64,000 bases of DNA from Phaeosaccion multiseriatum. Taxonomy: Eukaryota > Protista > Ochrophyta, other classes. The stretch lies in NCBI GenBank assembly GCA_965112735.1, contig OZ218952.1, forward strand, positions 5,270,001 to 5,334,000. The letters run 5' to 3'. Shown here piece after piece: positions 8,822 to 10,387 of the stretch. Both the position numbers and the translations under genes were made by a program. The notes under the pieces were generated by a model. It made no database searches and was not told the origin of the DNA. It was given only the letters and a program-made list of their open reading frames with translations. The number at the start of each line of letters is the position of its first letter. Position 1 is the first letter of the stretch.

Positions 8822-10074
8822 CTACTCTTCCTCCCAGGCGCTGTCGAAGCGGACCACAAAGTCCGTCCCCCAGGGCCCGTCCACGACGTAGTCCTCGTCC
8901 TTGGAGGAGGACAGGATGAGGTCCCTGTCCCTGTCGAGGGCATGCCCAGAGCTGTCGCGTTTCAGGATCTGAGTCTCTCCCATGACCCCGCTCCAGCGCT
9001 CCACGCCGACGTCATTGGGCTTGTGGATGAAACCAACGTCGAGCACATGGGCGTAGCAGCGCTCAGTCTCCTGGCGGTAGTCCACCTGGAAGGAGTACGT
9101 GTCGGTGAAGATGTAAACGCTCGCCCACGACCCGGGCGGGGTGAAGAGGTCTCTCTCGACGCGTTTTTCCGCGATCCACGCCTCACAGAGGGTCCTAGCT
9201 ATCCTCGGCCTGTGCAGGCGAGACTCCACAGCCAGCAGCACCCCAACGTCGTTACCCAATGCCATCTCCGAGAGGCGGCGACTGGAAGAGGGTATGACGG
9301 GGATGACAAAGGAGGGAGGGGGGGGAAGGGAGATCCTGGCTGGGCCACGGCTCCCTAGTAGTCACTATCGAGGACAAGCAAATCACCAAGCCGGGGCTCT
9401 ACCGCATGGCCAGCGGCGGCACGGTGATGGCCTCCAACACGGACGGCCCCCGTCCAGTGCAGCGTGACCTCCACATGATGGAAGAGCTCAACGAGGCGGC
9501 GTCTGAGAGGCGAGGCTTTGAGCCTCTCCGCCGCGTTGAGCTCTTCCATCATGTGGAGGTCGCGCTTGACTTGACAGGGGCCGTACGCGTTGAAGGCCTA
9601 CGTAGAGCCCCGGCTTTGTAATTTGCTTGTCCTCGATAGTGACTCCCAGCGAGCCGTAGCCCAGTATCTCCCTTCCCCCATTTGTCGTCCCCATCTTCTC
9701 TATTCCTGGGCTCTCCTATGAGGTGTGATACCTCTCGTCCTGGTAAAAGGACTCCTCCCTCACCCAACCTTGAAGCTATGAAAGCCAGACTTGGACAAGT
9801 CCGCTCGCCGCTCGCCTCGGAGGAGCGGGCAACATTGCGTTGTCGAGAGTGCTGACGCCCCCCCCCCCCATCCACGGTCAACGCCGGCAGCGTCCGTCAG
9901 TCTGAATTCCCCGCCGTTACCGCTACTCAGGCGCCTGCTCATGTCGCTGCTGGCGCCACTGCTGCTGCTGCTGCCGCTGCTGCTGCTCCATCTCCGGTGG
10001 GGCTTCGTGTGCTGGAGCTGCCCCAACTGCTGCTGTCTCTCCGGTCCCGCTCGAGGCAGGCTGGCCCACGCCAT
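8822..10074 (-). CDS. Two-exon hypothetical protein (~257 aa)
   Basis: Exon 1 10074-9764 (ATG MAWASLP..., donor GTGAGG at 9763); exon 2 9281-8822 (acceptor CTCTTCCAG). The phase-2 junction joins ...SFKVG to RRLSEMALGNDVG...WEEE*. No recognisable domain. Confidence 0.55.
9296..9695 (-). ncRNA. Long intronic inverted repeat / candidate pre-miRNA or hairpin RNA
   Basis: Arms ~9296-9510 and ~9520-9695. Perfect 28-bp (9466-9493/9534-9561) and 24-bp (9360-9383/9621-9644) stems. Transition mismatches mostly form G:U pairs on the minus (host transcript) strand. Confidence 0.55.
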
Positions 10075-10387
10075 ACAGGGCCATAGCCATGGGCAAGCCA
10101 ATAGCAACTTGAGGCAAGTGTGCAAGCAGCCAACAAAGTCGCCTGATGTAGGCGCCCGCCCCAGCCAGTCCCCAGCGCGGGAAATTGCTCAGCCGTTGCT
10201 GACCCTCCAAACACCTATGATCTTCAGCCCTCCGAGGCTCCTGGTTCGTCTACTGTCCTTCTCAGCGGCCGAAACGAGCCCTCCTCTTCAAACGGGGGAG
10301 GCGCCTAGCTACCCTTCGTCGATCGGACAGCCACTGCTCAACAACGCAGGCGCCCCCTGCTACTACTCTACGCCCACGCATCCGACT

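Follow-up and report, generated by a model that had tools for sequence, protein, structure and literature searches.

Plant microRNA (miRNA) genes are said to have arisen by inverted duplication of their target genes, a model reportedly put forward by Allen et al. 2004, and pseudogene-derived endogenous small interfering RNAs (endo-siRNAs) have reportedly been found in mouse oocytes by Tam 2008 and Watanabe 2008. For plants and flies, an origin by inverted duplication is an established model (PMC3237417, PMC10317233), while at the level of DNA, template switching at short inverted repeats is known to yield inverted duplications (PMC10766183, PMC7999016). In Ectocarpus, 75% of the miRNA loci lie in genes, mostly in introns, and have long foldbacks, and none has been traced to a protein-coding gene (PMC4513859). 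Here we describe a hairpin-forming inverted repeat of about 400 nt from the ochrophyte alga Phaeosaccion multiseriatum, which lies in a 64-kb window, i.e. the whole stretch of DNA that was analysed (positions 5,270,001 to 5,334,000 of contig OZ218952.1); unless a locus or contig handle is given, all positions below are those of this window. The hairpin is almost certainly a fold-back (inverted) duplication, with an origin that can be read at base resolution; the copy of the gene that holds it has decayed and lost its 5' part, and belongs to a lineage-restricted family of many paralogues. The fuller statement, that it is a fold-back duplication and a mutational scar without demonstrated RNA function, is likely to hold.

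The closest described systems are the duplications produced by fold-back priming, by origin-dependent inverted-repeat amplification (ODIRA) and by mechanisms of the fork stalling and template switching/microhomology-mediated break-induced replication (FoSTeS/MMBIR) type. The hairpin resembles these in that its inverted copy directly abuts the template (PMC10766183, PMC7999016). It resembles them also in its inner junction, which lies at a pre-existing 7-nt inverted repeat whose 28-nt spacer became the loop, and in its outer junction, which combines a 3-nt microhomology with a short re-copy, and further inverted fragments are present at the locus. It differs from them in size, being ~210 nt long where the examples from yeast and humans measure kilobases to megabases, in being interstitial within one exon and old enough for 13% divergence, and in the strongly one-sided distribution of that divergence, which those models do not predict.

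Several small RNA loci offer further parallels. As in plant MIR genes born from inverted duplication of a target, the arms are homologous to a protein-coding family over their full length, with extended complementarity to many potential targets (PMC3237417), but whereas those genes occupy separate loci with promoters of their own, the hairpin is embedded in a family member that has decayed. Like the hairpin RNA (hpRNA) loci of Drosophila, it is a long inverted repeat that came from one member, gene or pseudogene, of a multi-copy family, and the endo-siRNAs that it would give could act on the founder genes (PMC10317233), in a genome that has Argonaute and RNase III genes. Its stem, about 190 bp long and imperfect, is however shorter than those of the Drosophila loci and of the loci giving pseudogene endo-siRNAs in mouse oocytes, and the taxon is a different one. 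The intronic miRNA loci of Ectocarpus (Tarver et al. 2015, PMC4513859) are like it in lying inside a gene, in the orientation of the host, and in having long foldbacks, but these average 170 nt, compared with ~400 nt here, and none was traced to a protein-coding source.

Extent and origin of the hairpin

A first-pass annotation of the window had reported an imperfect inverted repeat of ~400 nt at 9296-9695. The repeat is present, and global alignment of its two halves extends it to ~9285-9712, with 149 matches, 23 mismatches and four indel events. A repeat search returns three nested pairs of arms (9412-9499/9528-9615 with 81% identity, 9340-9402/9602-9664 with 90% and 9321-9339/9661-9679 with 95%), and the two perfect stems of the annotation have exactly the coordinates that it gave, 9466-9493/9534-9561 (28 bp) and 9360-9383/9621-9644 (24 bp), both being maximal and neither extendable. 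Overall, the stem is paired at 149 of 176 positions. Folding, which the annotation had proposed as a check, gives a very stable structure for the RNA of either strand over 9282-9763, at -336.7 kcal/mol for the minus strand (z = -20.4) and -320.9 kcal/mol for the plus strand (z = -16.9), with no shuffled sequence as stable in either case. Searches of the window agree with the annotation that it holds no second copy, and apart from a CCT/GAG microsatellite the hairpin is the sole long inverted repeat in these 64 kb.

The arms match a 295-aa open reading frame (ORF) found at the paralogous loci L003/L027. Just downstream of the hairpin, an intact minus-strand ORF of 147 aa (8822-9265) is 87% identical to residues 144-295 of this same paralogue ORF, and the host gene therefore belongs to the very family that supplied the arms. 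Read along the minus strand, the locus is colinear with the paralogues from 9667 to 9493 and then turns back on itself, repeating the last ~210 nt in reverse complement (9492 to ~9285), after which the gene resumes from 9281, 10 nt behind the point of departure, and proceeds unbroken from 9271 to its stop codon at 8822. What is extra relative to the paralogues is the 221 nt of 9492-9272.

Both junctions can be read base by base. Junction 1 (between 9493 and 9492) has the sequence CCGCCTC/GTTGAG, the slash marking the junction, which is the exact reverse complement of CTCAAC/GAGGCGG. The arrangement GAGGCGG-(28 nt)-CCGCCTC, preceded by CTCAAC, is native to the closest paralogues (L027 and L029), and its 28-nt spacer is the loop of the present hairpin. 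At junction 2, the re-copied TCGCCGCCTC (9281-9272) is a second copy of the 10 bases that end the sense arm, and a 13-nt direct repeat with one mismatch (9272-9284 and 9493-9505) is found around the inverted insert. The annotation had seen no target-site duplication (TSD): none flanks the repeat as a whole, as it said, although this direct repeat does flank the inverted half alone. It is a template-switch footprint, not the TSD of a transposon.

Three observations bear on the template of the duplication. Pairing of the two arms reaches ~45 nt past the end of nucleotide homology to the paralogues; a derived T is common to both arms (9638/9366), where 12 of 12 paralogues have C; and in a maximum-likelihood (ML) tree the arms are sisters (support 91/83) within the L027/L029 clade, the branch of the inverted copy being 3.3 times longer. 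Together these show that the duplication was local and did not come from a paralogue. In identity to L027, the sense arm stands at 91% and the inverted arm at 86% (114/133). The sense arm also lacks 23 nt, which shifts its frame, and since the inverted copy (9402-9424) and all the paralogues keep those bases, the deletion is later than the duplication. An origin of the inverted arm in another paralogue was ruled out, as no locus is closer to it than 86%, the arms are sisters and the mutated patches that were tested are unique in the genome; an assembly artefact was likewise ruled out by the divergence of the arms, 13% plus indels.

These features suggest the following scenario. During replication or break repair, a nascent 3' end (...CCGCCTC) would have annealed to GAGGCGG, 28 nt upstream on the same strand, and the nascent strand would then have copied itself backwards for ~210 nt, giving GTTGAG onward at junction 1. 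It would have returned to the original template via the CAG microhomology, with 10 nt re-copied. Later on, the sense arm lost 23 nt and substitutions accumulated, the inverted copy taking most of them. If the locus is transcribed, its RNA would fold as a long hairpin that Dicer could cleave, as a by-product.

The host gene and its family

The host gene is a decayed copy. A search of the whole window finds neither the conserved upstream exon of the family nor the conserved start of its main exon, and a ~65-nt piece of family N-terminal coding sequence lies inverted at 9791-9856, within the upstream 121-aa ORF. This copy, from which most of the N-terminal region is missing, has lost the capacity to code for the complete domain. 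In the downstream ORF, 12 private changes are non-synonymous and one is synonymous; the last 120 codons of this ORF carry only three private changes. At 9195-9210, two indels (-1 and +4, the latter adding CTAG) are found ~15 nt apart and compensate each other, changing AEDR to PRIAR and leaving the ORF in frame; they may represent one complex mutation or residual selection on the frame. The features of the locus are listed in Table 1.

Table 1. Features of the hairpin locus and its flanks, with the private changes counted in each segment
Feature	Position	Strand	Basis	Private changes
Upstream 121-aa ORF (the implied exon 1 of the first-pass annotation)	9763-10125	minus	ORF list; unique in genome	
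Second inverted family fragment, N-terminal residues ~38-56, antisense to host gene	9791-9856	plus	BLAST E = 2e-7; alignment	
Outer sense arm, paired with 9285-9336; weak or no nucleotide homology to paralogues	9668-9712	minus	arm alignment; BLAST homology begins at ~9667	
Sense arm, including loop region 9500-9527; residues ILGYGSL...MMEELN..RRRL; colinear with L027/L003 ORF and 11 other paralogues; 121/133 identical to L027	9493-9667	minus	tblastn	1-3/142 (~1-2%)
Site of 23-nt deletion in sense arm; RMANGGTVM codons removed, frame shifted	9600-9601	minus	arm alignment; paralogue alignment	
Native short inverted repeat, left half: now GCGGCGG, ancestral GAGGCGG, right after CTCAAC	9528-9534	minus	paralogue alignment; base-by-base reading	
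Native short inverted repeat, right half CCGCCTC; junction 1 between 9493 and 9492, leading into GTTGAG (reverse complement of CTCAAC)	9493-9499	minus	alignment; base-by-base reading	
Inverted copy of 9493-9712 inside exon; family sense on plus strand; keeps the 23 nt lost from sense arm	9285-9492	plus	alignments; ML tree	12-14/142 (~9-10%), over 9337-9492
Junction 2: CAG microhomology (9284-9282) and 10 re-copied bases (9281-9272)	9272-9284	minus	repeat search; alignment; base-by-base reading	
Rest of family gene SEMALGND...SAWEEE, stop 8822-8824; intact 147-aa ORF, ATG at 9265	8822-9271	minus	87% aa identity to L027 residues 144-295	3/299 (1%), over 9189-8822
Flank after junction 2, dense private changes: six substitutions in 9240-9259, -1 and +4 indels at ~9195-9210	9190-9271	minus	paralogue comparison	6-10/71 (8-14%)

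The family has more than 25 copies in the genome and is built around an uncharacterised, well-conserved domain of ~240 aa, with the motifs DYRQE.ERC.AHV.D, WSG..GETQ and DEDY.VDGPWGT.F.AR (L027:1576-2382 and aligned paralogues). A protein search with the 295-aa ORF gives 55 matches in the genome, which include 14 full-length open copies (65-100% identity), about a dozen at ~53% and fragments. No match to the family was found in Pfam, in a PDB sequence search, in the ESM Atlas or in a word-based protein search. A profile built from 18 paralogues recovers 109 distant relatives in public data, 77 of them at E <= 1e-10, and reveals no function; in these relatives the domain mostly forms the C-terminal part of a longer protein, one relative carrying a subtilase domain and one coming from the transcriptome of the diatom Thalassionema frauenfeldii. 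An AlphaFold model, with a predicted local distance difference test (pLDDT) score of 48, was too poor and was left unused.

The conserved upstream exon encodes ~65 aa, GDPMVFGFK..WYAALAERHLQWNWRLSVFPSCENGAQPV, and is found in paralogues at L031:983-1186, L036:1111-1314 and L034:1146-1334 (gene on the plus strand), where it (GDPMVFGFK...SCENGAQPV) is separated from the main exon by a (CA)n-rich intron. The contig of the hairpin also carries, at distances of 65-90 kb, two intact paralogues, L027 and L028 (C3:5188852-5189736 and C3:5213481-5214332). One of them, L027, is in the clade to which the copy in the window is most closely related, and in this region the family is thus loosely clustered.

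One-sided divergence

Private substitutions are distributed very unevenly between the segments of Table 1 (chi-square 25-34, p <= 1.4e-5). Read 5' to 3' on the minus strand, they define one contiguous mutated tract, ~10 times denser in such changes than the sense arm and the rest of the gene, which begins exactly at junction 1, at 9492, and runs to ~9190, taking in both the inverted copy and the flank beyond junction 2. Within the tract, changes are concentrated in three dense patches of 20-30 nt, and for two of these no donor was found elsewhere in the genome, the flank patch being searched at up to three mismatches. The tract has the geometry of newly synthesised DNA in the fold-back model.

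Within the hairpin, the same asymmetry emerges when the differences between the arms are polarised with 12 paralogues. There are 19 such differences in 142 gap-free columns, of which 14 are private to the inverted copy, three to the sense arm (two of these abut the 23-nt deletion) and two are ambiguous, a one-sidedness with a binomial p of 0.013.

None of four explanations that were considered accounts for this one-sided, hypermutated tract, which is left unexplained. Polymerase error falls short, as 10% is far above any known polymerase error rate, and copying from another locus finds no donor elsewhere in the genome for the two patches tested. Gene conversion that refreshed the flanks is hard to reconcile with the derived base that survives in the sense arm, shared with the inverted copy, and in a gene that is broken there is no evident reason for constraint on the sense arm. 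It is conceivable, though doubtful, that the dense private changes arose together with the duplication instead of building up afterwards, as the footprint of extremely error-prone fold-back repair synthesis. A second reading, also doubtful and compatible with this one, is that the scar has turned into a source of hpRNA directed at its 12 or more paralogues. If the first of these were true, the locus would hold a direct footprint of such synthesis during fold-back repair in this alga.

Alternative readings and what the locus means

Several points tell against the reading of the locus as a fold-back duplication that survives as a scar without demonstrated RNA function. Decay has not been uniform across it, contrary to what simple neutral decay of a dead locus would give, and the density of changes in the tract exceeds polymerase error rates, as said above. 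Two perfect runs of at least 28 and at least 24 bp surpass random placement of the differences (P = 0.018, post hoc). A Piwi-domain (Argonaute) gene is present on contig C13, and genes with RNase III domains are present on C1, C2 and C4, all of them scored by domain presence only, and the hairpin has perfect 21-mers in common with 12 intact paralogues (1-45 each). Finally, the intact 147-aa ORF and an in-frame GT...AG intron leave room for a truncated, expressed product.

Much of this would fit a young hpRNA or proto-miRNA gene, in which the exon fold-back is transcribed alone or in the host pre-mRNA, its ~190-bp stem is cut by Dicer and the resulting siRNAs silence intact paralogues in trans. 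Besides the common 21-mers and the genes for Piwi-domain and RNase III-domain proteins, with which a silencing role would be feasible as far as sequence goes, such a gene would agree with the very stable fold on both strands and with the 28-bp and 24-bp duplexes kept beyond chance. The hairpin is also bracketed by GT and AG on the host strand; in Ectocarpus, most miRNAs sit in introns and have long foldbacks (PMC4513859), and inverted duplication is an established route to such loci in plants and flies (PMC3237417, PMC10317233). However, the argument for selection on the RNA from G:U pairing does not hold up. The first-pass annotation had counted seven transitions that give G:U pairs on the minus strand vs two on the plus strand, and had taken this as a sign of a selected structure. 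The bias is not significant, with six G:U pairs in the minus-strand RNA vs two on the plus strand in the polarisable part (p = 0.29) and seven vs four over the whole stem (p = 0.55), and the imbalance is a by-product of nearly all substitutions having fallen on one arm.

A hint of non-random preservation comes only from the perfect runs. In a simulation that counts each indel as a single event, one 28-bp run is unremarkable (P = 0.16), and for the two runs together, clustering of mutations is an equally good explanation, given that a comparably dense patch is found beyond the hairpin. In a host-strand transcript the guides would come from the antisense arm, and it is this arm that has moved away from the family (86% identity to L027, vs 91% for the sense arm), the opposite of what silencing in trans by that transcript predicts. 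The Ectocarpus survey, for its part, found no miRNA derived from protein-coding genes (PMC4513859), and a search of metagenome contigs with the central palindrome pattern gave no match. A small RNA gene of this kind is unlikely, and the hairpin is likely to be without selected RNA function. What stands of the annotation's proposal of a selected structure or small RNA source is that the hairpin is real, is not a transposon, lies between usable GT and AG dinucleotides and would form long double-stranded RNA (dsRNA) if transcribed, which makes it, formally, a candidate hpRNA.

The annotation had also placed the hairpin in a 482-nt intron (9763-9282). The minus-strand GT at 9763-9762 and AG at 9283-9282 are indeed present and usable, with a GTGAGG donor and a pyrimidine-rich acceptor (...CTCTTCCAG), and codon arithmetic from the ORF coordinates puts the upstream 121-aa ORF and the downstream ORF in one frame when 9763..9282 is removed, the exons having been searched separately. 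This intron is not ancestral, however, since its 5' half is host coding exon and its 3' half the inverted copy of that exon: coding sequence is uninterrupted at this point in the paralogues, and the 'intron' holds the family residues ILGYGSL...RRRL. Inverted copying of a purine-rich stretch gave the acceptor its pyrimidine tract, and tract and AG alike were created by the duplication. As for splicing out the insert alone (GT 9492 ... AG 9282), this was rejected, as it leaves 10 extra nt and there is no GT at a frame-restoring distance.

A truncated protein could nevertheless still be made if the hairpin had been 'intronised' between donor 9763 and acceptor 9282, with the upstream ORF joined to the C-terminal half-domain and the stem bringing the splice sites together. 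The donor and acceptor, the common frame of the two ORFs and the intact downstream ORF, with so few private changes in its last 120 codons, are what one would look for in such a product. Yet joining in frame has a one-in-three chance of occurring anyway, and the upstream ORF is a poor exon: it is unique in the genome, repeat-rich, unrelated to the real upstream exon of the family and partly antisense family sequence. The private changes downstream are overwhelmingly non-synonymous, and the sense arm, which would be neutral intron under such a model, is the conserved arm. Expression of a truncated protein is, on balance, improbable.

Copy number and the homology of the hairpin with the host gene effectively refute the idea that a miniature inverted-repeat transposable element (MITE) or fold-back transposon inserted into an intron. 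The hairpin does have a terminal inverted structure of MITE-like size, and fold-back elements do occur in this genome, one of them inserted in another copy of the family. But a search of the 67-Mb assembly, which the annotation had named as a way to reveal dispersed copies, returned a single full-length match, the hairpin itself, along with about a dozen half-length matches on both strands (73-86% identity), all in the coding sequence of paralogues. Both arms are homologous to the coding sequence of the host gene itself, and no TSD flanks 9285-9712. Two true fold-back elements served as positive controls, giving at least 210 and at least 124 matches by the same search; they are the only other long inverted repeats in ~82 kb of family loci, and both are dispersed. 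Like the hairpin, such elements (e.g. L054:2050-2515) are hairpin-forming inverted repeats of a few hundred nucleotides inside a gene; unlike the single-copy, host-derived hairpin, they have more than 100 copies, terminal inverted repeats with a 4-bp duplication and no relation to the host.

The first of these elements, 466 nt long (L054:2050-2515; C13:3207865-3208330), interrupts a copy of the ~53%-identity subfamily between ...NDEGV and E... and has perfect 167-nt arms, a tRNA-like internal sequence and an apparent 4-bp duplication, CGTG. Many of its matches in the genome, at least 210 in number, are at 99-100% identity, and it therefore looks recently active. The second is a chain of palindromes with 95-97% identity and arms of 124-176 nt, located 500 nt downstream of the intact paralogue L027 (L027:2901-3670; C3:5190231-5191041). 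This chain is part of a fold-back repeat family dispersed through the genome, which gave at least 124 matches and has a common unit of ~410 nt (query positions 384-791).

A known conserved miRNA or structured RNA family is effectively refuted as well: Rfam models of several miRNA precursors do give E-value matches, the best being MIR1437 at 68 bits, but all are far below their gathering scores (68 vs 168; 36.6 vs 61), are scattered over unrelated families of plants and animals and over both strands, i.e. they reflect generic hairpin similarity.

Read as a fold-back duplication, the locus is a datable, base-resolved case of a short native inverted repeat seeding an inverted duplication within an exon. 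Such an event makes, in one step, a dsRNA-forming hairpin homologous to a whole gene family, together with a new pyrimidine tract and AG. This is of relevance to a lineage in which the one large survey of miRNAs saw no link between miRNA and coding gene (PMC4513859). Fold-back duplications of this kind are raw material for the birth of hpRNAs and miRNAs and for intron gain.

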